DNA of 64,000 bases from Parasitella parasitica NRRL 2501 (Eukaryota > Fungi > Mucoromycota): the NCBI GenBank assembly GCA_025201805.1, contig MU619268.1, positions 3,472-67,471 on the forward strand, written 5' to 3'. Under the pieces are notes generated by a model. The model was not told the origin of the DNA, did not search any database, and worked only from the letters and a program-made list of their open reading frames with translations. Position 1 is the first letter of the stretch; every line of letters starts with the position of its first letter. Shown here in pieces: positions 18,160 to 49,720 of the stretch. The position numbers were made by a program, and so were the translations under genes.

Positions 18160-18770
18160 GCTCTTTCTATTTGCTTGCGAGGTATATTACACTGTCGTAA
18201 ATCCATGGTGGTATCTGCTCTAACTGAGGTGGCAGCCCTGCTTTATCAACTGCCACTTGTATGCCTTGGATACTTAAAATTTGGCCTATCTTCAATGCTG
18301 CTCCTTTCATTCGAAAATATTTATTGATGAACTGTAGTATATGTTATCTTCATTGGGCATAACAGAGCCTATTTTTAGAATATATGCAGCACAATATCCC
18401 AAGCCTATTCACCAAAGTCATACTATAGTGTCGCATATTCCATATTTCCAAAGCTTTCCAAAGCTTTCCAAATCAAGATATAGGATTCAATTCTTTTCAC
18501 TTTGTCTCCTAGATAATTTGATTATCTTTTTAATTAACTGGAGTTGACAATGATACTGATTCATCCTTGAGCACGGCAGGCTCAGATGCATCTATAGAAA
18601 CGCATTCAGCATGAGGTAAAGTAGAAGTTGTAGTATTTATCCATGCACCATCCTTGGAACTTCAGTTGCAGTATTCTGCCAAAGGTTATAAGATGTTAGA
18701 TGCCTTGATACAAAGATATGATACAATTGTTTTGAGTGGCAACAACGTAATGATACCAGCACTAGTGCAT
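18160..18770 (-). pseudogene. COQ8: Decayed N-terminal fragment of COQ8/ABC1 atypical kinase
   Basis: The minus strand at 18313-18263 reads RMKGAALKIGQILSIQG, followed by '...GLPPQLEQI' (the UbiB-family KxGQ motif in COQ8 context). Upstream, 'FGKLWK/YG' is broken by a 10-bp tandem duplication (~18448-18467), stops and frameshifts. The kinase core is absent. Confidence 0.8.
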
Positions 18771-18854
18771 ACATTAAAATCGACAAGATTACGTGAAAGT
18801 GACATGTCAAATTGCGTTATAATCTTAATTGTCAAGCATGATTTAATTTGTATT

Positions 18855-18999
18855 CATGTAGTTTTATTCTAATATAGATAAGCTGCTTCTTATCAATTGA
18901 TAAATCAGTAGTTTCGTATTTGGTAAAGCTAGTTTTTAATATTTTCCATTTCTTTAATCATGTACAATTACCTGCTCATTTTCAAGATCTGGCACAACA
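18855..18999 (+). repeat. Diverged copy of the LTR-like fragment at about 3455-3605 (and 4995-5145)
   Basis: Shared blocks TTTATTCTAATATA, GCTTCTTATCAAT, ATAAATCA, TGGTAAA, CTGCTCATTTTCAA and CTGGC(G/A)CAACA in the same order; both end at CAACA. Confidence 0.75.
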
Positions 19000-19535
19000 G
19001 TAATACTGATTTTTATAGCTAATTTGTTACATTCTTACACGTGAACTAACTATAAATCCCTGGTTTTTCAAATTTTACCTTCTTTGTTCAAGCTCCTTTT
19101 TTGAATATACCTAGAAGTGTTTAATAGGGCTGAAATCTGGACTCTGAACGGTTTAAAATTCAAAGGAGTGGACATCTGGCAGCTTTTTATATAGCAATAT
19201 ATGTATTTTTGTTTTCTAATAAAATTTGGACATTTTATTGGTTGGTAAGTGTCGTAAGCATATTTCCCCCCTCCCAACAACAAAGCAGCACTTCCATTAT
19301 TATAATAGCTGGTCATAAACTCTCATACATAAACGTGTTTTTAACCTTTTTTATATCAACAAATAGACTAAAAAAAAAAAAAAACTGTTGAAGGTACTGA
19401 AAATTTAAAATTAAAGTATACTATATCAAATATAAATATTATATAGTGTGTTCTGTTGGTCAATTCCACACGTAACTGTAGGGAATAGCAGAGATGATAT
19501 GTGCCTTGGGCACATAAAGATCGTTGAGTTTGTTT

Positions 19536-20785
19536 TTACATCATGAGACTATTCAAATTTTCATTTAATATGATATCCGACACAGCCATCATAACATTCT
19601 GTAAAAGAGTTGTGTCTGTTGCATCTGTGAAATGCACATAGACTTGCTTGTCTGGCTGTCTGTTCAATCTTCGAAACTTTGATTCAAAATAGTTTATAGC
19701 CGTATCGTAGTTTTCGACTTGGCTGCTGTAATCAGGGAAAAAGTTTGCTATAGGCGAATATGTTATTTTCTTTTTGAATATATCAATCTTGTTCAACAGT
19801 AGAATTATTGAAGTCTGTACAAACCAATGTGAGTTACATGTGGTGTCAAACAGCATGAGCGCCTCGTGCATCTGTAAGTATAGATTATTAGTATGGATGT
19901 CTTGTACTTGGATGATATACAAACCTGATTTGAATTTCTATCTTCAGCCAAACATTGATCATAGCCACTGATGGCAACAACAAACAGAATAGCAGTTACA
20001 TTTTCAAAGCAGTGAATCCATTTTTTTCGCTCACTTCGCTGACCGCCCACATCAAACATGCGATATATAAGCGGACCGAGATGAAATGTAGTTTCAACAA
20101 TGCCAGTTGTCTTTGCTCTGCAGCGAATGATATCTTGATCGCTTGGGATATAGTTAGGGTCCCATAATTTATCGATCTTCTCAAAGAAGCTAGTATACAA
20201 GTAGAAAACAAATTAGATGCTGTAGCTTGTATGATTTAAATGCTTACTAGGATATGTTGTCGTGTAACGCAAACATGTTGCCCTTCTTAAACGCAGCTTG
20301 GATGGTTTCGTTGTTCCATAAATTTTTCAGCGGCTCAAGGTAGATTTGAGGAAATGGTTGGTTTTCTTCTAACATGAGAGTTTCGATGAAAAGGTCAGCG
20401 TAATCCTGTTGATAAATTAGTTTGTGCTTTTAGTAATGTTGATACATTTATCGATATGTACCTTGGAAATTGGATCAGTTAATTCCAAGCCTAGTATTTG
20501 TAGTGCGTCCAACAATGTTTGAATCGTCGAAAATATATTGGAAAACACAACTATGCGAAATCCTTCTCGCTCACTCGCTTGAAATCCAGAAGCGTGTATT
20601 AACCTCATTTGCTTCAGCACTGTTGATTTTCCAGACTCTCCCGCGCCCAGCAACAGTAATTTCACCTCCCTTTTCATACGTTTCTGGTCTGCTTTTATTT
20701 GCTTATCAATTGCTCGACTTTTCATTGCTAGAGTATTCGATGAGCCGTCTGCGTTGGGTGTCGGCTTGCTTTTAGTATTTCCCAT
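19536..20785 (-). CDS. Heterotrimeric G-protein alpha subunit (closest to fungal group II type)
   Basis: MGNTKS myristoylation motif, GAGESGKS P-loop, 'RAKTTGI', '[17 protein letters not shown]', NKID and 'HFTDATDT'. Confidence 0.96.
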
Positions 20786-21430
20786 CTTGCTCACTTTTTT
20801 TTTAACAGATGTATAAACCTGGGAGGGGGGGGGGGAGGGATGAAAGAAAGAAAGAGAAAAAGACTCCTTGTATCCTTTTTGTTCTTCAAGTATCAGGGTT
20901 GTATGACAAGATTTCATGGCACATACAAAAAGTATGTGGAAACCTATAAATAGAGTGACGGTTGCCCTTCAGTACGCTCAAAAACAAGTGGATTTTCATG
21001 AATTGTGGGGTAACTAACATTGTATTCAAAGGAAATGCAGCCGTTGGTTTTCTGGTGCGTGTATTTCTTGGCTTGAAATAGAAAGAAATGTCATTGAGCT
21101 TGTTTTTGTATTGGTTAATATGAAAATTGGATTTCACATCATCGATTACTGCTGAATGCCCGGTTAAAGCATAAAATACGTCAAACTCTCCTTTGGCTCA
21201 TGGCCAATTTGAAGTTTCTGTAATACGAAAAAAAACCTTAAATTAGTCAGTGTACCTAAACTTGAATCAGCGAGGCAAGCTATATATGATTACATGGAAT
21301 TGTTATATTAATTCAGTTCAACATTGGCTGTATAATCGAGCAATAGAATGTGCAAAATACGAATGACTTTTTATTTCTTTTTTTCTTTTAATGTATGTAG
21401 CTATAAAAGTGGGATGCAAATGTTAAATTT

Positions 21431-24168
21431 TTAGTTTCTCTTTTCCTCAATAAGGTTCCAGGTATCTCTCCAGACAAGATGACTGTAGTCCTTGATGGGG
21501 CCAATCAGACCAAAGGAAACAGGTGCAAAATGAATAAAGATCCCAATGACTACGGCGTAGACAGGGATAAAGACCATCCATTGTACAGTTTTTGAGCAGT
21601 TGCGAGTGTAGTGATCCATCAAGAAGGGAACCATGAGGATACTAAAATAAAGGGCCGGGAAATAATGGTGCAAATACGTGACACGGCCCATAATAAAAAA
21701 GGGGATATAATGGAAGAACCAACCAAGGAAGAGTGTCTTACCAGCATAAAAGTAGTGATCCCATTGAGCTATAGGAAGCCGTGGTTAGTATGTTATGCAT
21801 GTATTGCAGTGTTTGTTCCTGCTTACCAAGAGTCAAATCATTGATCTTTCGTTGCATGCGAATCATGTAGTAGGCAGTAGTAAGACAGAACGCAAAAATT
21901 GAAGCAATAGACAACCACCAAACAGCGGGATTACCCAAAAGATAATATTTGACATCGTTATCGCCCCAACCACACATACGAAGTCCTACCGTGACAAAGG
22001 GCCACTCTGTAGGAGTTGATGAGAGGATATCGTACTTGTCAGGGTCAGGAGTCAAAGCGTTGTTGGATGTCCACATGGCAATATTCAAAGTGATGAAATC
22101 GCGAAGGAAATGCTTCTTATAAGCATTTGGTGGGGCAGGAGGCAATTTCTCGTTCCAATGCTGCTCGACATTCCACATGGAGTAAGGATCGTTGGTGTTG
22201 TTTCTCTTGTCACAGAACACTTCGGATTGCTTGAAGCCCCATTGAGGCAAACTAGTGCCATCAGCAGTTAAAAGACATCCCTGCCTGATATGGCGAAGAC
22301 GGAACCGAGTGGTTAGAGAACGAATGCGTTGCTTGTCATGGTAAATAAAGTCATCGACAATTTCGACTTTCCAATTATCTTGAACATCGCCAATGGTTTC
22401 ATTACCATAACAACTGACTTCCCACTGAGCTGCAGTGACGGGAGCATTGACAGGATGGCTGTGCAAGTTGCGGCCAGTAGACGAGTGTTGGAGACGAACG
22501 ATATCACCATCTTTAACAAAACGAATAAACTCCTTGTTTGCTGGTTGCTCATAGTCGTGTGCATTCAAATTTCTAGGCGGGCGGATGTCCCAATGATTAT
22601 TGTCATCCTTGTGGTGATAGCAAGTTACTTGCTGTTGCTTGGATCCTTCAGGGTAAGTTTGAACATGTGAATGAAGTAGTCCGCCGCCGTAGCCAGTGTT
22701 CTTGAGCGTCAACTTTGATCCATAGGCAATTTCTGTGCAGCAGTTAGCATCAAGTCATTATCATTTCTTGTTTGATCTCTTACCGAGAGGATTGTCAACC
22801 ATCGAATTTCCTTGCAAGTTGGCTTGGAAAAGAGAGCTCATTTGAGCATCGCCAGGACCACTCTTGTACAAAAGGGCAAAGTGCAAACCAAAGCTAGACA
22901 CATAGATGATTGCAGGAATGATAATGAGACTGATAATACGAGCAATCCAGTGACCCATATATGTCTTTTTGGGCATTTGTAGATCACCCCACATGTTCCA
23001 AAGATCTTCGACTGTATAACATCCGACAACAGCCACAGCAAAGAGACCAACCCACTTGACACTGAGTACACAGCCTAACGAAGCACCGCTTAAGCAAAGC
23101 CAGGTCCACCATTTGAATGTAAAAGGACTTTTTTTTTTNNNNNNNNNNNNNNNNNNNNNNNNNNNNNNNNNNNNNNNNNNNNNNNNNNNNNNNNNNNNNN
23201 NNNNNNNNNNNNNNNNNNNNNNNNNNNNNNNNNNNNNNNNNNNNNNNNNNNNNNNNNNNNNNNNNNNNNNNNNNNNNNNNNNNNNNNNNNNNNNNNNNNN
23301 NNNNNNNNNNNNNNNNNNAAAAAAAAAAAAAAAAAAAGGTTAATTGAATGTACATATTCCCCGCCTTTCTCTCTCGCTCTCTCGCTCTCTCGCTCTCTCT
23401 CTCTCGCTCTCTCGCTCTCTCTCTCTCTATTTACCGAGTAACACCATAGTAGCTGCCAAGAGTGATGCCTTGGTAGTCATCTTTAATTGGACAGCGGTAA
23501 GATACGCAATGGGAACCATCATGGCACCGAAAAACGCGTTAAAGATACGCATGACAGCAAAGTTGACATTGTCAGGATAGGCAGCGCCAGATTCAAATCC
23601 AAATGAACCATTATAGCCGCCCAACCAGCCTGATAACCCAACCAAGATCTTTCCAAGTGGCGGATGCACATCGAAATAGAAATCATGGTTCAAATAATGC
23701 GATCCAAACTGATATCATTACATAATAAATATACTTTTCCTCTCTCAGCATTTGCCAAAGCTTACCTTGCCAAAATGTGCCTATATCGCAGATGAGTTAT
23801 TTCATTTGGTTTGCTGACCACACAAAAAATCACATACCTCATCCCAAACAACATGATTGCTAAGTGTAATCTTTCTGAATCTGGTCCAAAAAGACAGCAG
23901 TGTCAGCATAATTGTAGTGATCGTGTGTTGATTTTTTTGCAAGAAGGCGATATTCTAGGGCTCATCCAATTAGCAAGCTGTCCTACGTAGCAATGTAAAT
24001 ACTTACTTTGTTTGAGGAATAAGCCATTGGCGCTTGAGGTTGCGGGCGGTACCGGCTGTATGCCTTTTCCTTGGTGCCAATGTAGTCATCGCCAGCTACG
24101 GCAGAATACTGTTGCTGGTGCTTTTCAGACACATTGGGAGCGTGTCTTCTTTTCACTGTTGTCTCCAT
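21431..24168 (-). CDS. PMT2: Dolichyl-phosphate-mannose protein O-mannosyltransferase (PMT2 subfamily-like); one exon probably lies in the N gap
   Basis: 'VVWDE|AHFGK|FGSHY', '[11 protein letters not shown]', 'SVKWVGLF', '[16 protein letters not shown]', MIR domains '[25 protein letters not shown]' and '[16 protein letters not shown]'. Confidence 0.93.
23367..23428. repeat. (CT)n/(CTCG) microsatellite in a PMT intron
   Basis: Directly visible repeat ctctcgctctctcgctctct... next to a poly-A run and the N gap. Confidence 0.9.
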
Positions 24169-25211
24169 TTCTGGAAGTGTGTCTAAAGAAAGAGAAAAAG
24201 AAGAAGGAAGAGAAGTTGATGAAATGTGGATTAAGAAAAAGACGCACGTTTTTATAGGTAACATCAGTTTTTCTGTACTGGCCTTTGAAAGCCCGTTCAA
24301 CAGCTTTTGAAGGTTGTACTTGAATGGGATGCCACTACTTCTTTATTTCTGTATTTCATTTGATTTGGTTGGGCACGGCAGACTTGAGTATGTGTCTATC
24401 TTTCTTTCTTTTTTGTTCGCTTTTGGTTTTTTGAATACTGCACAGATGCTTTGAACGAGAATGTCAACTTCATTGATTTTTGCCACATCAGCGACACTGA
24501 TTGGCGTGTCAAAAGGTTTCAAGCAGCCAACAACAGACTTTAAAATAAACATGGAACTTGATTGAATTAGAGGCTTTTTATTACACTCGTCTATTTTGTA
24601 GTGACATTTAACAAGTAATACATAACATTTGAGTAATATACAAGCGAATACAACACCACACGGTTCTATTGCGACAATCGTTACACACATTTAATATCAT
24701 AAATCATAATTAGCGATTCTTACTCCCTTCCAAACATCATGGCAGCTACAATAGTAATCAAATAATGCCGTATTGCTATAAGGCACTTATCAGGTACATT
24801 CTATCCATTCAAAAATGCTTTGGTACTGCCATCTACTATAAAAACATAGCTGAAAGGCATTCATATGTACTTGGAATACGTTTGCGCTTCAAGTGATTGT
24901 GTTTTCAGCTAAACCATGTACCTGAAAACTCTTGGTGCACTATCTAATGTGATGATATATATTATATACAGTAGAAAAAAAGGGATAGATTTGCACAGTC
25001 TTTATTTTGAGCAGCCTGTATCATTGCACATTTAAATAGATACAAACGTCGAGTGCATTTGTACAACAGCTCCAGCTTGCAAACATCTGGAAATATGACA
25101 AAACTCCGACCCACATGGCGACAACAACATCAATCAGGCACAAAAAGGCTTGCTTTTTCTTCTGATTTTCATTCATCTTGATCAATACAACTATATACAG
25201 AATGATTTACA

Positions 25212-25872
25212 ATGGAGGAGGTTGTGAGCTTGCAAATGAGCCACCTTGTTTAATACGGACAAACCAGCGAAATCATACATTGAAAAGTACCATATCTTCT
25301 TGCACAAACTTGGCATCCAAGGCAGACGATGCAACACAGTCCTGTACCAAAAAAGAAGCTGGCTATTGCAACCACCGTTGTGTTGTTTTTATTTGTGATA
25401 GAACTAAAGAACTGATTTCTGGATATTTAGTGAATTCATTGGGCAAGAATACGTTACAATGTATGTGACAACCTAAGGACCCAAATGCACCACTTGTTAA
25501 ATGTATAGCTTTAATGACTGATGCTTTTCATCTATTGTATGATGTGGAGAGTTTCATAGTTGCGCTAGCAGTGAAACCATTACAAAAAGTAAATTTGCGC
25601 TGCTGTATCCTATCGTGAATTAATATTTTATGGATATCAGAGCACGCCTACGGATTTCATCGAGCCAAAGTTATTGCTGCACTAGTGTCTGTCTTGACTA
25701 TTTGGGTGTTGACATAATTCCTAGTCGTGGAGGCCATAGAAAGGATTAAAAAACCCAAAGTTATTGATGCTAAACTTGTAAGTTTCGTACCGCCTACTCT
25801 GCAATCAAACGTTTCATGTACGGTTACATCTAGATGTGTATCACTGCCTCAATTGGAGTTCTAGCAAACTAA
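25212..25872 (+). pseudogene. Truncated, intron-retaining pseudogene of a cation diffusion facilitator zinc transporter (ZnT2/SLC30-like)
   Basis: Reconstructed 'KKLAIATTVVLFLFVIE/ELISGYLVNSL|ALMTDAFHLLYD...AYGFHRAKVIAALVSVLTIWVLT*FLVVEAIERI...|MCITASIGVLAN*'. It has an in-frame TAA at 25715-25717 and frameshifts, and nothing recognisable after TM4. Confidence 0.85.
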
Positions 25873-26934
25873 GAGACAAAGCAAGTCTTGCATCAAGACA
25901 TGAGCAAGTTCGCCTTCAGATTTCATAATGCACAGTAGGCTGGAAAGAGCTGTGCCTTTGGAGCTCAGGCATCGAGGAATCAGGATAAACTTTCAACGTT
26001 TATTCAATGGAAACTGACGTAAAAATAGCCGATGTAGAGAAGAAGGATCAAAAGGTCATCACCAGTACGCAACAAAAATTAACCTATTTCGAAAGCTTAA
26101 TGAAACTAACGGTGTTGTATGATTCATGAATATGTCAGTTTGCTGATATGATAGCTCCCTGATAACCACTAAGGAAGTTTGCACTAATGAGGCTGTTTGG
26201 ATCCCGCTCTGAGCTACATCACTATGACTTTATGAGTTTGCTACCTCTATGTTCCTACCAGGCACTAAATAATGAAAGCCAAAAATACGTCAAATACAAA
26301 ACTACGCCGCGCGAGAAGGACACGAGTTTGCAGTTTGTTGATGGCGAGGGCCGGTCGGAAAAGAGACAGAGGTTTTAGTTCAATGAGTGTCGTTATCTAG
26401 GCAGCCAATTCAATGCGAGTGAACAATGAAACGACATTACGTTTAACAAGAAGAATGGTTGACCATTTGGTTGTAAAAAAAAAAAAAAAAAACACATCTT
26501 GCATGGCTAACGAAAACAGCAATAGATAGTAGACATGTCTTTGAGCGTTACATGTCTGTGGAACAGATGATGATTAAAATGGCAACTCTTGATGCTTGGG
26601 CTGTAATGCATCCGTAGAGGGAAATCCTCGTGCCTTTAAGCTTTTTTTTTCCTGTGAGAAACGCATGCATACTTGGTAAAGACATGGCGGCCTTGTTCGT
26701 CTGTAGACAGCTGCAGCGGGTTTTAGTAAAATCAACTTTGACTTTTATTGACGATTTTCGTGCTTTACAACTAGGATAAAAAAAGAAGCACCAATGAACA
26801 GTTGCCTATATGTGAGAAAATTTAGCAGATCTTCCTGATTTGTATATTGATGCACCCCACGTTTTTTCAGGTATATAAATGCCATCTTTTTCATTTCAGT
26901 CTTTTGCAATTTTTTTTTTTTTCAATTATCAACT

Positions 26935-28629
26935 ATGCCCAGCTTCATCGGCTCTATTGACCAGGGAACAACCTCAACACGGTTTGTCGTATTTAATGAA
27001 AAGGGTGACATTGTGACACATCATCAAATAGAGTATGAGCAAAGCCATCCCCAGCCTGGATGGATAGAGCACGACCCCTATGATCTGCTGGATTCAGTAC
27101 ACACCTGCATTGAACATGCTATTCTGAAGCTACATCTGTTGGGATATGAAGCATCGGATATCAAATGCATTGGTCTGACAAATCAGAGAGAAACTCTGAT
27201 TACGTGGGACAGTGCTACAGGACATCCGTTATATCCAGCGATCGTATGGAGCGACACACGTACAATCGACACAGTGCAGCAGCTGGCAAAAAAGTCTGAA
27301 AAAGGAGTGGATGCTCTCAAAGATATCTGTGGTTTGCCTCTCACGACGTATTTTTCCGGCGTAAAATTACGATGGCTCCTAGACAATATTCCGGTTGTTG
27401 TACAAGCACAAAATCAAAATAGGCTTTGCGTTGGCACAGTAGACACTTGGTTGCTTTATGTAAGTGTGACCACAAACATTTGAGTTACTTCTTCTATTCC
27501 CATACTAACACGTATTGGTGGTTTTTCCAGAATTTAACTGGCGGCCTAGACCATGGAGGGGTCATTGTCACTGATGTAACCAATGCCAGCAGGACTATGT
27601 TGATGGATATCAATACTTTAAACTGGAGTCCCGAATCAATTGAGTAAGTCTTTTTTTTTTTTTTTTCCCTGCATTACACAAGATGACTGAAAAAATACAC
27701 GCAGATTTTTTGGCTTTGAACAAGTGCGTTTACCAAGAATCGTGTCATCGTCCGAGATTTACGGCACATTGGCTGAAGGCTCGCTTAAAGGTGTCCAAAT
27801 TGCTGGCTGTCTAGGCGATCAACAGGCTGCTCTCGTTGGTCAGCAGTGCTTTCAAGTGGGTGACGCAAAGAATACCTATGGCACTGGCTGTTTCATGCTA
27901 TTCAACACTGGCAATCAACCAGTGCAATCTCAAAATGGACTGTTGACAACTGTGGCGTATAAATTCGGCAACCATGAAGCTGCTTATGCTTTGGAGGGAT
28001 CTGTGGCTGTAGCAGGCTCTTCTATCAATTGGCTTCGTGATAATCTTGGCATCATTGCTGATGCTACCGAGTTGAATACGCTTGCGTCAAAGGTAAAAAG
28101 CACTGCTGGGGTGTATTTTGTTACTGCTTTTGCTGGTCTGTTTGCTCCTTACTGGAGATCAGACGCTCGCGGAACGATTTGCGGCATTACCCATTACACC
28201 AAATTGGAGCACATTTGTCGGGCTGCATTGGAAGCAGTTTGCTATCAGTCTCGTGCTATTCTAGAAGCTATGAATAAGGATTCAAAGACACCCCTGCGAT
28301 CTTTGAAGGTGGATGGCGGCATGTCCAACTCTGATCTTTGTATGCAGATTCAATCAGACATCTTGGGGATTCCAGTAGATCGTCCATTGATGAGAGAAAC
28401 TACTGCTTTGGGGTCTGCTATTGCTGCTGGCTTTGCCTGTGGCATCTGGAAGTCTTTTGAGGAATTGTCTGGCATCAATCAAGAAGGCAGGACTCAATTT
28501 GAATCAAAAATAACTCCAAAACGTCGTAAGAAAATGTGCGATGGATGGGAGCAGGCTGTAAAACGTTCTTTTGGTTGGGCCAACATTTCCACTACAGTTT
28601 CTACTGAGGATAAAGTTCTTCGGCTCTAG
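26935..28629 (+). CDS. GUT1: Glycerol kinase (3 exons)
   Basis: FGGY motifs '[14 protein letters not shown]', 'IGLTNQRET', '[12 protein letters not shown]', '[10 protein letters not shown]', '[11 protein letters not shown]' and 'LKVDGGM'. Confidence 0.97.
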
Positions 28630-29082
28630 ATTACATGTATCTTGTCAACATTATATTGTAAACTACTTATTGTACCATATTTATATACCCCATCTTTCCA
28701 CTCGTTCGATTCCTCTTTTTATTGTAATAGGGTATCGCTTTAATAAAGTTGACACCATTTTAAAATACAATGTGTGTTGTATGTAACACCAGGAAGCTGG
28801 ATTCTACGGAACAATCTTTTGAAATTGCTTTTTAGGTTGCATAAAACGCGACTCTCCGCATCGAAAAGTCTCCCTTTTATGGAATGACTGAAAGCCTTGT
28901 AAAATGATGGTTCAAAGCACGCCAAATATGCGGATGCAGTACTGTAATTTGAATGTTGAAAATATGTGTTTTATTTAAAACTTATATGTGCAGAGGTTTA
29001 CTTTTTAAAAGTGGTTTTCATCATATGATATTACACACTAAAATTCAGCTAGTTGGTTAATTTACAATGTACGGGAAAGAAT

Positions 29083-32725: not shown

Positions 32726-32740
32726 ATAAATGTAATTTTT

Positions 32741-34854
32741 CTAAACGAATTTTTTGTCATTACGTTCAACACGCAATTTCCAGTAGAGATAACCAGCAAT
32801 GCCAAATAAAAATTGTGCGATAAAGGCGTAGAATATGTATTTAAGCAGGCTGGACATTGTTCCCTTGGTTTCTGCTGAATGAAGGTTGACTTCATTCATC
32901 TTTTTTTGCATCATATTGGACTGAGAAAGTATACGTTTCTGTATAGAATGTGAATACGCAAAATTGTTGCCTTGCAAATGTCAACTTACATCCAACACAG
33001 CAAGCGTTTCTTCCAATCTAGCTACGACCGTTTGAATTTCTTGCATTTTACGGTTTTGTTCCTGAGCTAATCGCTCAAATTGGTCGGTGGCCTTCTTTGA
33101 TTCGGACCGAACCTGGTCAGTGATATGAGATAGGTCGCTATAGATGGGATTGCTTGATGAGCAAGAGTTACGCTATGTATTTGATGGCTTACATGTTACT
33201 ATTGCCACTTGCACTTGGTACGGCTTTACTAAAATCTGGTTTTTGAAAATTACCAGTAATAGCATCATCTGGACTTGGTGCTCCTAACGCTTCAATTTGT
33301 AATTGGACAATTTGAATGTGTTCAATTGCTCGTTTTTGAGTGTCATAAATAGCAGCCTACATTGTAGATCATTTTGAAACATTAATGTTTAAGCTAGCAT
33401 ACCATGTATGAGCAAATCAAATTACCATAGTAACAGCCGTTTCTCCCTCGAAACCTTCAGTTTGATCTCGCAATTTTCTCATTTGATATTCTGCTTCTTC
33501 GATCTTCTTTTTCTGCTCCTCGTCTATACCTGTGAATTCGTCTCCTCTCTTCTTTTTTTCATCTTCTAGTGGGCGTTTTGGGTGCTATACAAACATAATA
33601 AATATATACATAGTGCGTGAAATTAGATTTGGTGAGAAAGATAATGATCAACTAATCAAACTTACCTCTAATTTTTGAGGAGGATTCAGCTGCTTTGTCT
33701 CAAATGAATAAATGTCATGATCATCTAGTGGAAATTGATTTAATTTATACGTTTAGGCACACAAATAAATCTGTTACGAACCAGCAGGTGTGTGCGACGA
33801 GGCCTAAAGAAGACGTGTCAAAATCTAATCCAAACTACATGCTTAACCAACTTACAGATACGCCAAAATAATATCCAGTAGGTAATTTAATGCCGGATTT
33901 TTGAACACAAATGCGATGATCTTTTCCGCCTGATCCGTTATCCATAGAAATCTATTTTTCAGCCAAGGAAGATCAGCATATTACACCGAAAAGGAGAGGG
34001 AGAGGGGAAAAGGAAGGGAAGGGAGGGGAGAGGAGAGGGGCGGTAGAAGGCAACACTAAAAAACAAAACAAACAAAAAGTACATGTACTTACACTAAGTG
34101 TCGTGTCTTTGTAAGATACTTTGAGATAAGATGGGTTCTCTGTATTTCTGTAACTGATAGAACACGAGCCTAACATGTGCTTGGTTGGATCAGTACCAGC
34201 AGCAAATGCCTTGGTTCCATCATTCAATAACACCATTGTACTGGGTTTATGTGTCTAGTTTATAGATATCAAATTCATTAGATGACGAAATGACATTTCA
34301 AATGGCTCCTACGATCGTACCACTGGATTAGCAGAATCAAGCCAAACGCTGAGTCCATCCCATTTATCCCTGGCACCAAATACAGGGCCACTTTCTTCTC
34401 TGTCTTTTGTATACCAAAATGCCAAACCACGCCCACCATGCATATTATTGCCTGTGACTTTAAAAGCTATCTCCACTTCCCATGATTCATAAGGATTTGG
34501 TATTTCAGACCAAATGTATCCTTTTGTATTTGGTATAGAAGGAGACAAACGGATAAAATCCGATGATTTCAATACGTCTAGATATCGATCAGTAATTTAT
34601 CATTCACATACACATGCACGCACACAACGCACACAATGGCAATACTTACCACCACCTAGTGTCCAAAAAGGTACAGAGCTATTGTAGTAAAAGTTTTTTT
34701 TAAAGGAAAGCTTGTAATCAAATTTGGAAGTTGGAGCAAAAGGCAAGTTTTCTTCTGCCTGGATAGGGTCCGTTTTGGCACTCCCCCATATACCAGCAGA
34801 ACACGTTTCAAGTAGTAGCAAAGAGGATATAACAACTACACCAAAGCTTTTCAT
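32741..34854 (-). CDS. Legume-like (L-type) lectin cargo receptor, ERGIC-53/EMP47 family
   Basis: Signal peptide, 'FDYKLSFK', 'IRLSPS...GYIWS', 'GGRGLAFWYT', 'GYYFGVSA', 'DDHDIYSF', a coiled-coil stalk, a TM segment and the C-terminal KKFV (KKxx) signal. Confidence 0.92.
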
Positions 34855-35571
34855 TGTGATAACAAACGCGTAAAGTATAAAGATAGAAAAAAGAGGGGTA
34901 AAATCCGTTTAAATAATATTTGCTTTGTGTATGACAACTCTTTCCAATTTTGTTCAGCAGCATGAAAGCGAGTTACATGCACTTCAGAAGCCTGCTTTGC
35001 AAGGAAATCTCACTAAACACACCACAGGTATAATCTTAGTCAGAGAATTCTCTCTTTACCTGGAGGAGCCGTGGCTTTCTAAAGCTTCAGATATACTTAC
35101 GCTCAATAAAGTAGTATTAGATGCGAATCGCAAACCTTTCAACAAAGTTAACACACGCCACTAGCGCTTGTACCTAAAGGCCAAAAATCTGGCAGATCAT
35201 AGCGTGTCAGACAAACAACATTTGTCAACTTCATAATTCTTGTGATTACAACTATATAAACATCAAGAAATAACTTTGAACCCAATATTGCTGTTGCTTG
35301 TTAAAAGAATATCAAATTAAATAGACAATCTTATTTTATAATATTACTCTTTTCCTTATCCTGGAATTTTGTCGTATATGTAATATGCATGCTTAGAACT
35401 GAGCATTGGCAAAATATAATTTTGATTATCGATTTAAATAATGATCGACATTCTGCCACAATATTTTATGTAGATAAAATCAAGATAGAGCTGTCAAAGC
35501 TCATTCTGTTTATTATGAAAAAAAAAGAGGGGGGGGGGGAGTGTCGGGCAGGATACTACAGTATAAATCAC

Positions 35572-38019: not shown

Positions 38020-38239
38020 GATTGCAAAGCTGGTACAAGAAAAAGAAGTGAAAAGAAGTTGTCCATTTTGCAAACATGACTGTGACCCCCAGAGAGTTGG
38101 GCCAATCAAGCATCAATGGTATCATGCACTGCACCACTCCATTTCAAGCCTATTGTAAAAGACAATGGTAACCTATACGTCATTTGCTGTCCACCCTGAT
38201 CAGAAATCATTAAAAGGGCCAAAGTTTCATTTAAGTTCG

Positions 38240-38272
<33 letters not shown>

Positions 38273-38299
38273 TCTTTCTCCCTAACCCTTACTGTTAGC

Positions 38300-41033: not shown

Positions 41034-41070
41034 TATTTTTTTATTCAACTATTAATTCAAATGAAGTAAA

Positions 41071-42029
41071 CTACCACCCCTGCGTGCCTGATTTGTTCGC
41101 GCCACGGATCAATAAACTTCGTAAAACCTCCCATCTCTTTTCGCATACATCAGCACTATGTTTACCGCGTAATTTTGCTTCAGCTTCTTTCCATCGACAT
41201 CCGCTTAACCTTGTTAATACATGCGCCATTAATATCTTGTCGTCATCCATAGTCCATGTTTCGTAACCGCGAATGAATTCATGCTTTGGTTTTGGCGAGC
41301 TTGACGATTCACTGGCAGGTGGAGACAGGATCGATCTGGTATCGTTAGTTGCTTTTATTTGTTTGTCGCTACAGTTTAAATCACGTGGTGGTGTAGGAGG
41401 CCTCCACTTGTCCTGTTCTTCATGTTTCACGAATAACTAGATAATATATGATTTAGATATTATCTTATACAAGACAATTAATAAAAAAATAAATATACAT
41501 CATTTTTTGGTTGTTGCGCTTTGCTCAAGACATAGGCTATTAAATCTTTTGCTGAGGGTTTCCTAGCTCTGATCTTTTTTTTGAGTGATGATTGAGAAGT
41601 TGAGGAAGACTAACCGTAAATTAGAGGAAATGCAAGTGGTTTTGAATAGTTATACTCACAACGATATCAGTGTTATCATCGTCACTATCAATCAAATTTC
41701 CCTCGCCATCATACTCCAGAAAAGGCTTTGATCTTTCTAGTTATTTTTGAAAAAGTTTAGTGATATATAAAACTACATGTAACTGAACCAATGTCAAAAC
41801 CTTTTGGTGTTAGTCCTCTTGGCACATTAGGCGAGCCAGTCTTTTTGAAATTTAAAATGGTACGACGAACACTTGGTTGATTTATACCACACATGCGTGC
41901 GATCTGCTTCTCATTTGCTCCTGCTTGATATGCTCCGATGATGAGCCATCGTTTAGCATCTCTTCCATCTTGATTTGTCATTGATGCTGATGGTGATTTT
42001 GATTTTGATTGAGTTTTCGAATAGGTCAT
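41071..42029 (-). CDS. Putative transcription factor: N-terminal Tc1/paired-like HTH plus C-terminal Myb/SANT domain (4 exons)
   Basis: Exon 1 'RWLIIGAYQAGANEKQIARMCGINQPSVRRTILNFKKTGS'; last exon 'WTMDDDKILM...WKEAEAKLRGKHSADVCEKRW'; GT-AG introns join them in frame. Confidence 0.8.
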
Positions 42030-43410
42030 GTCGTCTGAAGGTGTTGAAAGAAAGAGAAAAAGAAGAACAAAAAGGGGGAAAGGGGAAATGTTATGTGGTC
42101 GGTTGGGAAGAATTCCCTTGCCAAAACGCATGACGTATTGGCCCAATAAAATCAAAGTGTTTAAGCGATGCATTAACTGCAAAAAGAAGGGCCTGGTACC
42201 TCTCAGCCAGCATCAAATGTTTACATATGCTGATCATAATTATATGTACTGGTTAGTTCACATGTCATAGTAAAATAATCTAATAGTAGATATAATGTGT
42301 CCATATATGTATTCTCTTTGTTGGAAATGTACCTTTATTTATGAATGGATTTATCGTGGGAACCAGTATTACACTAGCTTGATGTAGGATTGAGCTTGTA
42401 TTAAGTTAAACATGCATGATACTTTGTTCTTTTTTTAAAAAAATAAAAAACCTTTCCAAATATTATTATGCAGTGTTTAAACCTGTATAGAGAAAAGTAG
42501 TTTTTGGTCCATCAAAACACCACCTATCCTAAATCAGTCGCGCATAACATCATACTCTGAATTACATATCTTACCCATTGCATGGCCTTAAATAAAAGTT
42601 GACAACTACAACCACCAACTTTCATTTAAAAAAATCATATGAACGTCTATATTTTCCAAAAAGAACAAGCCGAGCCATGTTTTATACTTGTCTGATACTG
42701 CTATCAGATAACTACTTGCTTTCCACTGGGCGTCGTATACATTGAAACTTATTTTACAAAAGTAGTTGCTTTTTTTGAAAAATTATAGCTGTAAGGATTT
42801 GTTTTCTTGCTATGACCTTTTCTGCCAATAATGTATTTGGGTGACTTTAGGAGAGACATCTCTCCAAGCTGAGGTTTCTTTCTTATTATAAAGGTGCTCT
42901 GAGATTTGATTGAGAGAAAAGAATTTGGTATTCATAAGATTTGAAATCGATGTATGTTTTATTTGAGCTATTTTCTAGAAGCGAAATTAACTGTAGTGTC
43001 AATTTTTTCGAAGTTCATCAATAATACCATTATAAGGATTATTGCTCAATTTTCATAACGCATCTTCAAAACGTCTGCATCTGTGAATAGATCTGCCGCT
43101 TACTTCAGTATACGCTGAACCGATTTTTTCAGAAAGCTTCTATTTCTGTGCTGAAGGTAAAAATATCTTTAAAATTGTGAATCTAAGCCATGTATTTGAT
43201 TAAATTCAGTATAAATATATACGATAGCTGCAAGCAAGCTGAAGTAATTTTTACAAGCGTCTTATTTAACATCGCATAATTTTATATTAATTGTGCATTA
43301 TAAATTATACTGCACACATTTGACAAACCTTGAAAGTTAAAACTCTTAAATTTTGGTTACACCGACACAAAATATACCACAAACACAATACAGCTGTATA
43401 TTTAAATAAT

Positions 43411-44008
43411 TTAACTACCACGATAGGTAGTGTAAGAATAAGGACTAATCAACAAGGGAATATGATAATGTTGTTCAGGGTTAGCCAGCTCAAAAACAAT
43501 CTATTGGCATGTCAATAAAATTATACACTCTGCCCCATTAAACAAAAAAAAAAAGATAAAAAGACTTACTTGAACATAGGGATAGAAACATTCTTGGCCA
43601 ATCTTGGAAAAGAAAGCTTCAGTTTCAAAGGTAACACGATAGATACCCTTTTCAGCTTTAAAACCTTGGGGTAATAATGTAGGGCAACGTCCATCACTGT
43701 TTGTTTGACTTGTAGTAGATAAAAATGTGAATATACGATGATCCCGCTATATTTCCAAATATTCAAGGGCGCTTACGAAGTAGAGAGAGTGGCAAATGCA
43801 CCAGATTGATCCAATTTTTCAATCTTTACATCGATGTTTTGACCAGGAGTACCCAAAGAAGCGATGAGAACATGACAAGTGATTGGGCTTTTGTGAACTG
43901 ACATTATAGGCTATAAAAAATGTTTAGAACAATCACACTTGCACCAAGATTCTTTTATACCTTGAGATGTTCTTTAACAGTTTCAAGACGAGAAGAAGCA
44001 GAAGACAT
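43411..44008 (-). CDS. uraH: 5-hydroxyisourate hydrolase (transthyretin-like protein), 136 aa, 4 exons, with N-terminal PTS2
   Basis: Exons 44008-43961, 43910-43777, 43708-43570 and 43500-43411 give MSSASSRLETVKEHLK-PIMSVHKSPITCHVL...TNSDGRC...GIYRVTFET...FYPYVQIVF...HYHIPLLISPYSYTTYRGS*. YRGS is the HIUase signature. Not in the ORF track. Confidence 0.95.
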
Positions 44009-44327
44009 AATAAAAAAAAGAAGAAAAAAGGAAAAGAAGCGAGGTGGTAGGTCTGATTTCCCAATCTTTTATAGTAGAACATCTCCCCACGTGACCTATC
44101 AAATTCACATTCGTTTTCCTTCAACATTTCGTATAAATATCACCAGAAACCCACTATTTTATAACATATTATTCTTATTCGATTTGCTTTCCATTTGCCA
44201 AAACACATTTTTATATAATTCCTCGACTAGGTTTGGTTTTGAGTGAAAAAAAAAAAAAAAAAGAAAAAATCTGAGAGATTGCAAGCTCAAACGGTGGATG
44301 TGTATGTGTATAGTTCAATTTTAAAAA

Positions 44328-44749
44328 TTAATGGTGATGGGCAGTAGCGTCATTCTACAAAGAAAGCATTGAGTATTGGTATTTGATTTTGAGATGCGTC
44401 ACTTACGACAATAGGAGGAAGATTGCGCTCCCATTTGGTACCTTCGGGACCCATGGGCACTAATGAGAAAACTGTTAGTATTTATAAAGAAAACTTAGAT
44501 GATTCAATTTTTACATTTGTAAGGGTCGGGATGAGCCCAATCTTGAAGTTCGCTCTCTGCATTTTGGATAAGAGCTTGGATTTCCTTGGGGTTGGTAACA
44601 TGTTTATTTTGCTCAAACTGAGCTCTGATTTGAAGGCTTTTCTGTCTCCATAAATCACGTTGGATATACCAGTCAAGTGAAAGCTTTAGCGAGCGCTTAT
44701 AAAGTGATTGAACCTGCAAACGATGTGCAACTGCAGTTGGAGTGGACAT
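44328..44749 (-). CDS. NDUFB9: NADH:ubiquinone oxidoreductase subunit B22 (LYR family)
   Basis: 'SLYKRSLKLSLDWYIQRDLWRQK...IRAQFEQNK...WAHPDPYK..PEGTKWERNLPP'. Confidence 0.93.
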
Positions 44750-45094
44750 TTTTTCGATGTTATTATTTTAAGAAAAGGTTGAAGAACAAAAACACAAAAT
44801 CAAAACAATCTTACACCTACAATGTTTTCACTCCCGCTTGGGGGTGTGGTGGGCACACCCTCTGAACCACTGCATGTCATACGTCCTTAAGTATCACAGT
44901 ATTCATGATGACGTACATAAAAGTTGGACTATCTATGCTCATCTAAAATGTCGTAACCCATTAGACAGGTAGTGGGCCCACTAAACATGGCATTCTCAAG
45001 TAACAAATTGAGATAATGTTGGTTTATTTTTCTCCCAAATTCCACTTACAAAGCAAAAGGTATAATTTACAAAAGCATATGAAGTTCACAAATA

Positions 45095-45505
45095 TCAAGG
45101 CGATTCTGTGCTGTATATGTCATAATTGAATGTGGAATGTCGCATGCTTTCATTATCATCGTCTTGGACCTGTTGGTTATACATGTTATTATAAAAGTCA
45201 TCGCTTTCAATCCGGTGACCTGATGCATCATCCCCGATTTCTTCTACTCCATCATCATCAGCACCTCCCTCTTCGCCTTCCACGGCTTCCTCCTCCTCTT
45301 CTTCTGTCTCTCCAATAGCGGTTATTTTGGATGGTGGAATAGGCCGTCCACGAATCATTATAGGAATACCCACTTGAATGTCATTCAGTCTCTTGGCTTC
45401 AGCCTTGTCTTCCAAATAGGTTATTTCCTTTGCTTTTTCTTGAAGACTTAGCTTTTCAGAGTACCAATGAGAGCTCTTTCCTACCGGTGCTAATGCAGGA
45501 TACAT
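45095..45505 (-). CDS. Probable anaphase-promoting complex subunit 15 (APC15-like) with acidic tail
   Basis: 'MYPALAP...HWY...EITYLE...IRGRP' followed by a long D/E-rich tail parallels the metazoan ANAPC15 layout (FPSLFP..W..E...IGKP + acidic tail). Confidence 0.55.
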   Translation of the reverse strand: MYPALAPVGKSSHWYSEKLSLQEKAKEITYLEDKAEAKRLNDIQVGIPIMIRGRPIPPSKITAIGETEEEEEEAVEGEEGGADDDGVEEIGDDASGHRIESDDFYNNMYNQQVQDDDNESMRHSTFNYDIYSTESP

Positions 45506-45673
45506 AATGATAAAGACAAATCGACTAATCATGAGATACTGTATTCTTAAAACCATTAGTAGTGATGTGACGTTTTATATAAGGATGCCGTTTACCGTAT
45601 CGGTCAGTGTTTGTGCTTTGACCAAGAAAACTTGTTTCTGTAGTCAACACAATCATCCTCTCTAAATAAAAAT

Positions 45674-46386
45674 ATGGCGCCCAAACAAAACAAGAAAATT
45701 GAGGAAGAAGAAGATGCAATCTATGAAGTCGAGGAAATTGTAGACCATCGACGTTCTAAAGCTAAACAGGTAAAGCTTTCACCAGCTTTGGTTAATGCAT
45801 CTAACAGAATTTCCTTCAGAACATGGTTGAATATCTCATCAAATGGAAAGACTATGCTCCTGAATTCAGCACTTGGGAAAAAGAGCACAACGTGTAATAT
45901 TACGCACCATTGTTTACTACATTTCACTTACATTCTACTTACACTCAGGTATTCCAAAGGCTTAATCAACAGCTATTGGGCAAGGCAGCCTTATACGTTG
46001 ACACAGTTCAAGAAAAAGACACACGAAGGCGATTCGAGTATTCCAAAGAAGCGTCCAGCTTCATCGCAGGCTACAAAGATTGACCGAAAGCAACTGACTC
46101 AAGAAATCAAATCCTCGCAAATTTCCACATCACCTCCTTCTGGACTTGTTTGGACTGATATCGACGCTATTGTCAACGTATTCCATAGTGAACCTAGTAC
46201 GTTCTTTGCTGAAGTCAAGTGGTCAGGGGGTAAACGAAATACCTACATTCCTACAAGAATTATCAAGAAATATAACCCTTTGAAGGTAAGCACTACCAAA
46301 TACAGAGTATTCACACTGCTAAACGCCTTAAATATTAGCTAATTTACTATTATGAGAGTCAACTCGAGTTCCATTTATCTCCTTGA
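45674..46386 (+). CDS. HP1/Swi6-like chromodomain + chromoshadow protein
   Basis: Spliced chromodomain 'YEVEEIVDHRR...VEYLIKWKDYAPEFSTWEKEHNV' with aromatic cage residues; chromoshadow-like 'FAEVKW...IPTRIIKKYNPLK|LIYYYESQL'. Confidence 0.85.
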
Positions 46387-47273
46387 TCATCGAATCCCTG
46401 ACAGCTACAAGCTTACATCTGTCAACTGCCCAGCTTCTTTCCTTGAAATAAACGCAACTTTTAATACTTTAATTTGATGTAGCTGTTCCTAAACAATACC
46501 CGGAAAGAAGCATGCTTAATTATAAGCTGTATTTGCACCTGTTGACGACAAACGACTTTCTTGAGAAATCTTTTATAGAAGAACCGGATCTACTTGGGTT
46601 TGTCCATAACATACTACCACGCCATAGCCTTCTTGTGTGAAATCAAACGGGCTGAAGCGGTCTTGAAGCACTATCAAACAGGATAACCTATCTCAGTTAT
46701 GCTATCTAAGCAACGAATGACAATGCGTCATGACACAAGAGGGTGTTACAAGACAGTAATTCAAATTGGGTTGTATCTCTTTATAATGCTTATGACAAGT
46801 GTTTAAACTTTTTTTTTGTTTTGTTCAATAGATGTACTGTTGTGATTTAAATCCTTCATTTTAATCAGAAAATAGCATAATTCTAACATTTGCATTGTTA
46901 TAAAAAATTGGCAGTTGGTGATCTGATAATTTTCAAGCGTTTTGTATCAGCTCAGTGATTGAATTTAACATGGCCCGCATTGAGCTAGAAATTTAATGGG
47001 TATAATTTATGCAACAACGTACAATTGCTTGAAATATTTCCTAAAGGTTGATATTTATGAAAAAGGTTGATTGCTTTTTACAGATACAAACTTCCGGATA
47101 TTTATGGTCTTGAGGCATCTTGAAAAAATTGTTGACCGAGAAAATGCTTCCCTTCTTTCATGGCAGTAACGATTTGTCTCCATACAGTTTTAAGACAAAT
47201 ATTTTATTTTTTATCAATAGAGGCATTGTTTGGATCTTTCAAGCTACAGCTGTCCTCTAGCGTCTTGTCTATT

Positions 47274-48064
47274 TCATGCACTGTTATTTAATCCCTGCTG
47301 TTTCTCCAGCCTCTTCTTCTCAAACGCTTCTCTTGCTTTATCTTGCCATCTTTGCTGGTTTGCGATTTCATGTACCTTAAATCCAAAGATGCGCGGTACA
47401 TACCTTTCGGTGTTTTTGCTTGGTAGGTAATTGGAGTGTACCTGGAATAGCATGTGAGGAAAAGACGTACCAAAATAAGCACCGTCTATGGCGCCATGGC
47501 GGGATGACTTTGGGTTATATATATCTTCGCAGCGAGGACAGTATAATTTAACAGTTTTTGACATTGGAATATCTGACAATCCAACGGGTAAGAGAGATTG
47601 CATGTTACAGAGTACACGAGGACATCGTCCGAATTCTGCTCTCTTATATTTATCAAGCTGCCACGATACATACAATTAGTGTCGGCAAGTTTGATTACAA
47701 AGATACCATACCATTTTCATCAAACCACGGCTTGTGATGACAAAACGAGCATGAATCAGCCCAAACAGGTGGCGGGCTGACTTCTCAATCTGTTCTCTCA
47801 CTTTCTCCTCCAGTCCCGCCTCGTCTAGGTGCTTTGTTAATCCCCCGAAAACATAAATCTCACGCAATTTACAATACCAAGGTTATCCGTGATCATGTCT
47901 AACGCTTCCAAGTAATAATGAGGCACCTCGGCGCTTAAACCAGTCAAGTTGAATCTGTCGAGAATAAACTCTTCGTCAACTTCACAAAAGTATTCGTTGC
48001 CTTTTGTATCCAAAAACCAATCGATCCAGTATTTTGCATATTCGTCTTCGGAACCACTGCTCAT
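47274..48064 (-). CDS. CKB2: Casein kinase II regulatory (beta) subunit
   Basis: '[29 protein letters not shown]', '[12 protein letters not shown]', the zinc finger 'FGRCPRVLC...[12 protein letters not shown]' and '[13 protein letters not shown]'. The paralogue number is uncertain. Confidence 0.95.
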
Positions 48065-48394
48065 TTTAATATTTGGGTTTGCCTCGTAAGGATCGAAGCT
48101 TTAATGATTGTATTAGATATAATATGTAGAGAAACATATATTGTCAATATACGTACTTATGTTTGTTATATGAATATAGTCAAAAAGGGGAAAAAAAAGA
48201 AAGACATGGTATGACAAAAATATATTCATTCGGGGCACGTATAGAGTGATGTAGTAGCGTGTGTGTGGTGAATTTGGTCTGGATGATATGACGTGCCAAT
48301 GAGCATAGCTCACACATGAATTTGGCTATGAAATAGCAATTTCAATTCTTTATAAGGCAAGACAATATAATCGTTAAAATGTAATACGAGGATT

Positions 48395-49720
48395 TCTTTA
48401 CTGTGAATGGCGATGCTCCTTGACTTCATTCTTCAATATTTTTTATTATTATCAGACACAGCTGCACCTTCAACGTGAGCCCAAGCACCAATTTTATTAT
48501 TCCAAAATCAATTGACAGAATGAAGAACACAATTACCATGTTACATTTTAGTATATGAATATTAGCATGATTGTATGTAATACCGCTTGTATACATTACG
48601 TCTATAACAGTGACATTGTCTAAGGATATTGTACGGTATACTTAACTCGATCGCTTTTGCCTATAGTAACACAAATCTCAATTGATACATTAGGGCCAAT
48701 CTATTTAGGATAAATTGCCCAAGAGTAAAATCTAGTAGATATACCAAGTTACTTTAGAAGTGGGATCAATTTGAGCGGATGTGTGAATATAAATAACCTC
48801 CTTATTCCCAGGAACGTTAGCGAGAGAAAAATGACTATTATGGTGTTGCAATTCCAAATAAGCTGCATCAGCTGAAAAGCTGTGCCATCTGTTTTGATAT
48901 GTTTCCAGAAACTTTTGTGATTCGGATAAAGGGCGCAACAAATATCTTTCGAGGCTCAGTCTGTCATCTAGTACGTATTAGTTGCAGGTGAATTGAGTCT
49001 ATGCTCATTCTTTTGTTGTTTGCCGCTTTTTGATTTCATCAAACATTGTGATATCAAATGGGTATGCATCACACGAGATTAGGTTTGAAATGAGCGTTTC
49101 AGGTTTTTCGACATGAATGAAGCTCTTTATTAGTGTCAGCATTTTTAACCAAGTAATCCAATATTTTTTAGCTTGTTCACGAGCAATATTTTTTTTTCCC
49201 AAAGATATTTAATAACTAGTTTTATTTAGGATGCCAGTTTGTACGTATGTTGGACTCAGCATGGTACATATGCCAGTGTTTTAATGATAGTCTGCTGTAT
49301 TATGTATAGGAAATGTACAAGCAATATCAATGTGCGTAGCAACAATTTATGGAGAACTGCCACGTGCTGTTCATAATGCTTGATATTCACCAAGCCATCT
49401 TTGCAGATGGTTGAGTGCAATGCATATTTAAAAGAATAATATGGCTTTACTTGAAAATATCAGTTGGTACAATTCTTAACAAAGCAAGCAAATCCAGAAT
49501 TTTCAAAGAAACCAACAATCAACACCCTTGTAGGCCGTCTACTTTAACAAGTGCTTCCAAATGATGAGATAAAAATGGAGAACCCGCAACTAAAAATTAA
49601 GAAGTTTGGTATTTCTAGTGATAATGGTCTCATAATAATGGTTTCAGAAGGGCCATCAGCTAGAGTTATAGCCAGAGTATGAATCCAACAACAGGCAGTG
49701 TAAAGCAGTGTTTCTGACAT
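48395..49720 (-). pseudogene. Near-full-length decayed copy of mannose-1-phosphate guanylyltransferase alpha (GMPPA-like)
   Basis: Collinear minus-strand remnants 'DGPS...RPLSLEIP', 'KVDGLQ..IVGFFENS', 'VEKPETLISNLISC..YPFD', 'LRPLSESQK', the hexapeptide region 'IYIHTSAQIDPTSK|IGPNVSI' and 'GAWAHVEG'; many stops and frameshifts; intron positions retained. Confidence 0.85.

Follow-up and report, generated by a model that had tools for sequence, protein, structure and literature searches.

We analysed a 64,000-nucleotide stretch (hereafter the window) of the Parasitella parasitica NRRL 2501 genome (contig MU619268.1, positions 3,472 to 67,471; assembly GCA_025201805.1, 32.8 Mb in 450 contigs) and found in it the remains of three conserved genes, which encode the ABC1/UbiB-type kinase COQ8, a ZnT/CDF zinc transporter and an alpha-type GDP-mannose pyrophosphorylase (GMPPA). 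These remains are likely to be unprocessed (DNA-derived) pseudogenes of two origins, the ZnT and GMPPA relics being old duplicates and the COQ8 relic a younger fragment. Each of the three has a homologue in the same genome, disabling lesions and retained introns, the features by which unprocessed pseudogenes are recognised; since paralogues of all three remain in the genome, none is a unitary pseudogene. A preliminary description of the window had placed pseudogenes of COQ8, ZnT and GMPPA at these positions, which homologue alignments, in-frame stops and deletions confirm. It had also expected intact paralogues in the same assembly, and these were found for all three relics, COQ8 on contig C12, ZnT on C44 and GMPPA on C24 (C12, C24, C44 and C84 denote other contigs of the NRRL 2501 assembly). 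The intact COQ8 is an annotated protein; for the C44 ZnT and the C24 GMPPA, ‘intact’ means that exon-sized pieces are free of stops and does not imply a full gene model. Database searches used single stop-free exons as queries throughout, with exons left unjoined. All three relics are cases of ordinary gene death after duplication, a known kind of process.

The ZnT and GMPPA relics and their surviving paralogues

The ZnT relic (25197..25868, plus strand), recognised by Pfam Cation_efflux and by homologue alignments, corresponds to the front 40% of the gene. Cation_efflux matches the window at 25505-25771 (E=5e-8) with stops inside the match, and three exon remnants (25289-25447, 25505-25588 and 25643-25780) align to the C44 paralogue and to orthologues. 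An in-frame TAA falls within a conserved transmembrane helix (‘VLT*FLV’) and five residues are deleted; the first splice donor has changed from GT to GC, with an intact second intron and a preserved third donor. Nothing recognisable is left of the later ∼60% of the gene: relaxed tblastn and blastn searches of 25800-26800 gave only a non-significant match (E=0.05), and the spacer from the relic to the glycerol kinase gene GUT1 is of approximately ancestral length despite the loss of the back part. A DNA self-search with the ZnT relic region found no second copy in the genome. Among other Cation_efflux loci with stops inside the match, the one on C84 looks like a normal intron-containing gene.

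The GMPPA relic (48319..49672, minus strand) is full length by homologue alignments, with several deletions and at least nine stops in frame. Its alignment covers the whole of the C24 paralogue and the 3′ three-quarters that are available of the orthologue from P. parasitica CBS 412.66; the exon/intron spacing of the relic parallels that of the C24 paralogue, and at the protein level the relic is 50-53% identical to the intact orthologue and 33-46% identical to the paralogue in the same genome. Because Pfam PF00483 yielded nothing over the relic at E<=0.1, the assignment to GMPPA is based on the homologue alignments together with the match of the paralogue to human GMPPA (7d72_A, E=2e-21), which is far better than its match to GMPPB (6e-5). 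A stop-free piece of the relic itself has a weak match to 8yre_A, a GMPPA-like chain (E=0.008). As with ZnT, a DNA self-search with the relic region found no second copy in the genome.

Both genes are intact at the corresponding positions in relatives. The orthologous locus of Mucor lusitanicus contains G-alpha, the protein O-mannosyltransferase gene PMT, an intact 374-residue ZnT with a ZT_dimer domain, GUT1 and SBDS_N, while that of CBS 412.66 contains PMT, an intact 365-residue ZnT, GUT1, SBDS_N, HIU hydrolase, LYR, a chromo-domain gene and then a model that joins GMPPA and casein kinase II beta (CK2-beta). This public model (L039:19550-21682, 663 residues) fuses the two genes, and is probably an annotation merge of adjacent genes on the same strand. 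CBS 412.66 also has a LINE-like reverse-transcriptase gene between PMT and ZnT (L039:3735-5888), without counterpart in the window.

The preliminary description had allowed that the lesions might vanish in raw reads; the sequence of the GMPPA relic was instead reproduced identically. The contigs of three DNA runs, which may come from the source strain, equal the window with zero differences over 47200-51700, the interval of the GMPPA relic and its neighbours to which this check applies. In an RNA-like run, spliced contigs cover the two intact neighbours, CK2-beta (three introns) and a LIM-type gene (six introns), at a word depth of 200-400. Over the GMPPA relic, that run gave zero coverage at 48257-49162 and one unspliced 351-nt contig of depth 5.7 at 49212-49562. 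In the CK2-beta contig from this run, position 48098 is joined by splicing to an additional 5′ exon that begins at 48157 (window 48098-48256). Only ∼60-160 bp separate this exon from the 3′ end of the GMPPA relic, so that the CK2-beta promoter abuts the dead gene.

The paralogues of ZnT and GMPPA lie beside paralogues of the same neighbours. On C24, GMPPA(+) stands head-to-head with a LIM-type paralogue (56-69% protein identity to the gene in the window), the arrangement seen in the window. On C44, ZnT(+) and GUT1(+) follow in the same order as in the window; the best ZnT exon has 80% protein identity, and the two GUT1 proteins have 56-67%. The claim of the preliminary description that a duplicated block is losing genes in place is thus upheld for ZnT and GMPPA, whose paralogues have the same neighbours in the same orientation, and does not hold for COQ8, a younger partial copy. 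Similarly, the collinearity that it anticipated is present for GUT1 with ZnT and for the LIM-type gene with GMPPA, and there is no single sister block, the paralogues being on three contigs. Extension of the sister regions to +/-20 kb added no anchors except one dubious 22-residue match, and DNA self-searches with the relic regions returned only the regions themselves or the old paralogues, with no recent second copy. The 22-residue match (68% identical; window 55909-55974 versus C24:37226-37291) is in AT-rich, non-coding-looking DNA and has the order expected of a third anchor; it is too short to interpret.

To date the loss of function, we polarised substitutions with an outgroup and counted them by parsimony at codon positions 1:2:3 on the window branch and on the CBS 412.66 branch. 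The profile is flat on the window branch for ZnT (156 codons; 24:26:26 in the window versus 8:6:23 in CBS 412.66) and for GMPPA (190 codons; 43:39:27 versus 6:3:24). It is not flat in any of the four intact neighbours used as controls, GUT1 (19:15:78 versus 22:7:72), PMT (12:6:95 versus 16:8:88), Mem_trans (12:7:47 versus 13:11:43) and G-alpha (9:9:40 versus 11:3:35). From these counts we infer that constraint on the ZnT and GMPPA relics has been absent during most, if not the whole, of the period after the split from the CBS 412.66 lineage. This split is deep, with ∼19-23% difference in coding DNA between NRRL 2501 and CBS 412.66 and 27-36% at third positions. The losses of ZnT and GMPPA are old for this lineage and far younger than the duplication that produced the pairs. 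Of 15 genes counted in the stretches covered by the relatives’ loci, two are dead in this genome.

The COQ8 fragment

The COQ8 relic (18161..18807, minus strand) is a 5′ fragment that extends from the ATG (18805) to approximately residue 257 of 589. Stop-free pieces of the C12 COQ8 align to window 18170-18816 on the minus strand. The relic has 68% DNA identity over 631 aligned bases to the intact COQ8 at C12:342816-343652 (76% across 224 bp), and resembles COQ8 even across the poorly conserved N-terminal region. Its lesions comprise at least four in-frame stops in frame-consistent matches and nine deletions of 1-104 bp. The single 5′ intron of the parent gene is retained in the relic at 18410-18367, with a length of 44 bp compared to 57 bp in the parent and with GT donor and AG acceptor kept, and the relic was thus copied from DNA and not from mRNA. 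The kinase core, past residue ∼257, has left no trace in the whole 64-kb window. A genome-wide scan with Pfam PF03109 missed this relic, and its detection needed homologue-based tblastn.

Comparison with relatives indicates that the COQ8 relic is a partial copy of young age, made at the DNA level within the Parasitella lineage, and that it is unrelated to the old duplication. This conclusion follows from several observations. There is one COQ8 per species among the Mucorales matches listed, except for two entries labelled Rhizopus delemar; similarity to COQ8 is absent from the spacer between G-alpha and Mem_trans, where the relic lies, in CBS 412.66 and M. velutinosus; and a DNA tree (625 columns) unites the relic with the COQ8 genes of NRRL 2501 and CBS 412.66 (support 100/99), with M. 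velutinosus and M. hiemalis outside. The relic has an end branch of 0.40 in this tree, compared to 0.096 for the parent, which bears out a loss of purifying selection. Likewise, the relic scores highest against two Parasitella proteins (102 bits each), and close Mucor species score 79-85. The surroundings of the two loci differ: the C12 COQ8 has no neighbour in common with the window within +/-10 kb, and COQ8 is the only gene that C12 and the window share.

We suggest that part of the single COQ8 gene, beginning at the start codon, including the first intron and reaching approximately residue 257, was copied at the DNA level and inserted into the spacer between G-alpha and Mem_trans within the Parasitella lineage. 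Such a fragment would never have encoded a complete kinase and would now be decaying. Our guess is that it was copied by repair-associated ectopic copying. A copy of a dispersed ∼150-bp repeat (18853..19000) lies 46 bp from the 5′ end of the relic and belongs to a family of at least 35 copies with ∼74-80% identity. Capture of the fragment by a transposon was considered and rejected; no convincing terminal repeats or target-site duplication surround the relic and the repeat, and the fragment is single-copy.

Age of the duplication and alternative origins of the relics

The age of the older pairs was read from GUT1, the neighbour of ZnT. In a tree of 54 glycerol kinases, the GUT1 of the window belongs to an A clade (support 100). 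The C44 gene belongs to a B clade of Mucoraceae type (support 99, and 89 once Phascolomyces, Circinella and Zychaea are added). The A and B clades each contain Mucor, Rhizopus, Choanephora, Benjaminiella and Cokeromyces, among others, with Umbelopsis outside both. The A/B split, as this tree places it, is later than the divergence of Umbelopsis and earlier than the radiation of the Mucorales, an age that fits the early duplication proposed for Mucorales (PMC7339291). ZnT adjoins GUT1 both in the A clade (M. lusitanicus and CBS 412.66) and in the B clade (C44 and the deep-branching Phascolomyces), which makes a joint duplication of the pair probable. For Umbelopsis isabellina, the matches listed include a single GUT1, which lies beside DUF1295 as in the B block and has no adjoining ZnT.

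These results are best explained by the following history, which we consider likely. ZnT and GMPPA would be the ‘A’ copies of pairs that go back to a block duplication of great age, near the base of the Mucorales. Both copies of each pair would have been under purifying selection for a very long time, with the A copies still intact in place in close relatives. In this lineage only, the A copies probably lost function at or soon after the split from the CBS 412.66 lineage, and they would since have drifted neutrally in place, accumulating stops and small deletions and, in the case of ZnT, losing the back part. The surviving ‘B’ paralogues, the C44 ZnT and the C24 GMPPA, presumably cover the function.

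Several points weigh against this history or against parts of it. The sister copies are on three contigs, and the ZnT-GUT1 and GMPPA-LIM regions share only two genes each with the window within +/-20 kb; two-gene sister blocks on different contigs fit several small block duplications as well as a whole-genome event. The age of the duplication is that of the neighbour GUT1 and not of ZnT or GMPPA family trees. ZnT is not beside GUT1 in Rhizopus (A and B), Absidia (A) or Umbelopsis, where ZnT relics were sought and none found, and joint duplication thus requires several later losses or moves in those lineages. The timing estimates are parsimony counts over 122-190 codons, and the outgroup for GMPPA is a distant paralogue. 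The RNA label of the run that covers CK2-beta and the LIM-type gene is a tool’s guess, though its contigs are spliced. As for COQ8, a duplication before the split of NRRL 2501 and CBS 412.66 and one after it both fit the DNA tree.

The two-gene blocks and their different contigs would also be expected if the ZnT-GUT1 and GMPPA-LIM pairs were independent small segmental duplications and not products of a whole-genome event, with the later deaths unchanged. This possibility, which we take seriously as a minority reading, gains from the separation of ZnT from GUT1 in Rhizopus, Absidia and Umbelopsis and from the many duplications reported without genome duplication in Lichtheimia and Apophysomyces (PMC7339291). 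However, two separate neighbour pairs have a similar protein divergence (about 56-69%), and a genome duplication has been proposed for the base of the order, the point at which GUT1 splits. PMC7339291 recounts reports of genome duplication in Rhizopus delemar (Ma et al. 2009) and in Mucor and Phycomyces (Corrochano et al. 2016); these reports, together with the existence of paralogues for all three relics, two of them with the same neighbour, are also what favours a recent event, in which all three relics would be fractionation remains of one whole-genome duplication or hybridisation and the window one homeologous block. We consider such an origin very improbable. The DNA self-searches revealed no near-identical second block, the paralogues have only 56-67% protein identity, and the GUT1 split predates the radiation of the Mucorales. 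Moreover, ZnT and GMPPA are intact at the same position in CBS 412.66 and ZnT also in M. lusitanicus, COQ8 is single-copy among the listed Mucorales matches with a relic that is young and lineage-specific, and the paralogues are spread across three contigs. The suggestion of the preliminary description that the duplication was recent, or of hybrid origin, does not survive the lack of a recent copy in the self-searches and the divergence of the paralogues.

It is hardly credible that the lesions are assembly or sequencing errors, or that the relics are real genes with unusual introns. The assembly is fragmented into its 450 contigs and the window contains N gaps, but the three read-derived contig sets are identical across the GMPPA relic, the stops lie within conserved exon alignments, and substitutions are flat across codon positions. 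In addition, no spliced transcript of the GMPPA relic was found, while both neighbours are spliced and well covered, and large parts of COQ8 and ZnT are entirely gone. The chance that the relics are retrocopies (processed pseudogenes) is practically nil. We found no support for this reading; all three relics retain introns, and those of ZnT and GMPPA occupy the ancestral gene position. The preliminary description had argued from the retained splice sites that ZnT and GMPPA are not retrocopies, which agrees with the retention of their introns (with a GC at the first ZnT donor), and the COQ8 intron extends the argument to the third relic.

Of these explanations, we thus favour two old duplicates that died in place and one younger fragment, and each kind has known counterparts. 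In yeasts that have undergone duplication, one of two duplicates can persist as a short, recognisable non-coding relic, flanked by intact genes at the syntenic position. The relics of ZnT and GMPPA share this character, but they are found in a different phylum and in intron-rich genes, and they contain introns and splice sites. They also resemble fractionation after genome duplication in Mucorales, in that an old pair retains one member and the other decays in place, and in that neighbours are also paired (ZnT-GUT1 and GMPPA-LIM). They differ from it in that the deaths came long after the duplication and in one lineage only, with the copies intact in place in the sister species, and in that the duplication is known here from two-gene blocks and not from genome-wide synteny. 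Duplicated (unprocessed) pseudogene fragments that derive from segmental or ectopic duplication are known in human. The COQ8 relic is similarly a partial DNA-level copy with an intron, truncated at one end, in a new place and dead on arrival, but it is single-copy, ∼650 bp long and has no detectable flanking duplicated segment.

The ZnT and GMPPA relics are dated cases that show for how long an ancient duplicate can remain functional until a single lineage loses it; in Absidia and Rhizopus, ZnT is missing at the corresponding positions without a trace. A cluster of relics need not share one cause, as the COQ8 piece looks similar and has a different and younger origin. The three relics are also annotation corrections for the NRRL 2501 assembly, and they leave unchanged what is known of how pseudogenes arise. 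A wider reading, that the Parasitella lineage passed through a period of unusually frequent gene inactivation around its split from the CBS 412.66 lineage, we regard as doubtful. The basis offered for it is the two dead genes of 15 together with a fragment that was dead on arrival, with similar decay in all. If such a period did occur, and if DNA deletion is slow, one could read from this genome which of the old duplicates become dispensable, and the period might perhaps be linked to life as a parasite of other fungi.

The locus and its counterparts in other assemblies

ORF and Pfam scans give a gene order in the window that begins with a Ty3-type integrase remnant, RhoGAP, an eIF2B subunit, ATG6 and Mem_trans (-), followed by the COQ8 relic, G-alpha (-), PMT (-), the ZnT relic, GUT1 (+), SBDS_N and an L-type lectin. 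It continues with STEEP1, a PX-domain protein, HTH/Myb, HIU hydrolase, CK2-beta (-) and the GMPPA relic, and ends with the LIM-type gene (+), syntaxin, a DENR-like gene (a label from sequence alone) and PDX1/SNZ. GUT1 (26932..28629, plus strand) is the intact A copy and the neighbour that the window has in common with the C44 sister block. The intact CK2-beta gene (47204..48141, minus strand), the downstream neighbour of the GMPPA relic, is spliced and expressed, as is the intact LIM-type gene (49817..51700, plus strand), which is head-to-head with the relic and common to the C24 sister block. The LIM-type name is that of an earlier reader, and the one exon tested had no Pfam match.

The intact PMT gene (21434..24190, minus strand), identified by Pfam and by the PMT genes of relatives, encloses an assembly gap (23139-23318) that overlaps none of the three relics. 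The gap lies within a single gene, since 23430-23714(-) corresponds to Pfam PMT positions 30-123 and 22764-23120(-) to positions 161-245, and both flanks are collinear with the uninterrupted PMT genes of M. lusitanicus, CBS 412.66 and M. velutinosus. Approximately 220 bp of the relatives’ PMT lie opposite window 23139-23427, with ∼37 profile positions hidden, and the join is consistent. A second gap, of 10 Ns (3842-3851), is flanked by two tandem copies of a ∼1.54-kb unit (window 2684-5135). Both C44:82858-83631 and the repeat at 18853-19000 have repeat pieces in common with these copies, and just upstream of the copies is a Ty3-type integrase/chromodomain ORF (491-1771).

Three weaker candidates for relics in the preliminary description fared less well than COQ8, ZnT and GMPPA. 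The candidate at ∼34.9 kb is an apparently intact multi-exon L-type (legume-like) lectin gene (32744..34908, minus strand) with a signal peptide, stop-free lectin exons (Pfam E=8e-25 and 6e-9), a transmembrane helix and a KKFV tail. That at ∼42.7 kb is not a relic of a conserved gene but a member of a dispersed repeat (42560..42780) with eight other copies of 69-81% identity. For the candidate at ∼62.8 kb, a DNA self-search was empty, and no protein-level search was made.

The two assemblies named Parasitella parasitica, NRRL 2501 and CBS 412.66 (GCA_000938895.1; L039 and L040), were compared over window 10183-29522 and 43340-49295, and their orthologous genes differ by ∼19-23% in DNA. The GUT1 proteins are 92% identical; in the GUT1 tree, the gene of the window is sister to that of CBS 412.66, with a path distance of 0.10 to it and of 0.089 to M. 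lusitanicus. Reads from 2014 under the same species label contain only 2% of the words of the window. On these comparisons, NRRL 2501 and CBS 412.66 look like different species-level lineages, and a difference of ∼20% in coding DNA matters wherever the same-named assemblies are used interchangeably.

Gene content and order vary as well. Between SBDS_N and HIU hydrolase, the window has ∼13.8 kb (29522-43340) and CBS 412.66 ∼3.1 kb; the larger segment contains an orphan secreted protein, the L-type lectin, STEEP1, the PX-domain protein and the HTH/Myb gene, and is a lineage-specific rearrangement or insertion. CBS 412.66 has an extra ∼3.7 kb between PMT and G-alpha (L040:2942-6654) that is not in the window. 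In M. velutinosus (L041:4628-5933), G-alpha is inverted relative to PMT and Mem_trans, unlike the arrangement in the window, CBS 412.66 and M. lusitanicus.

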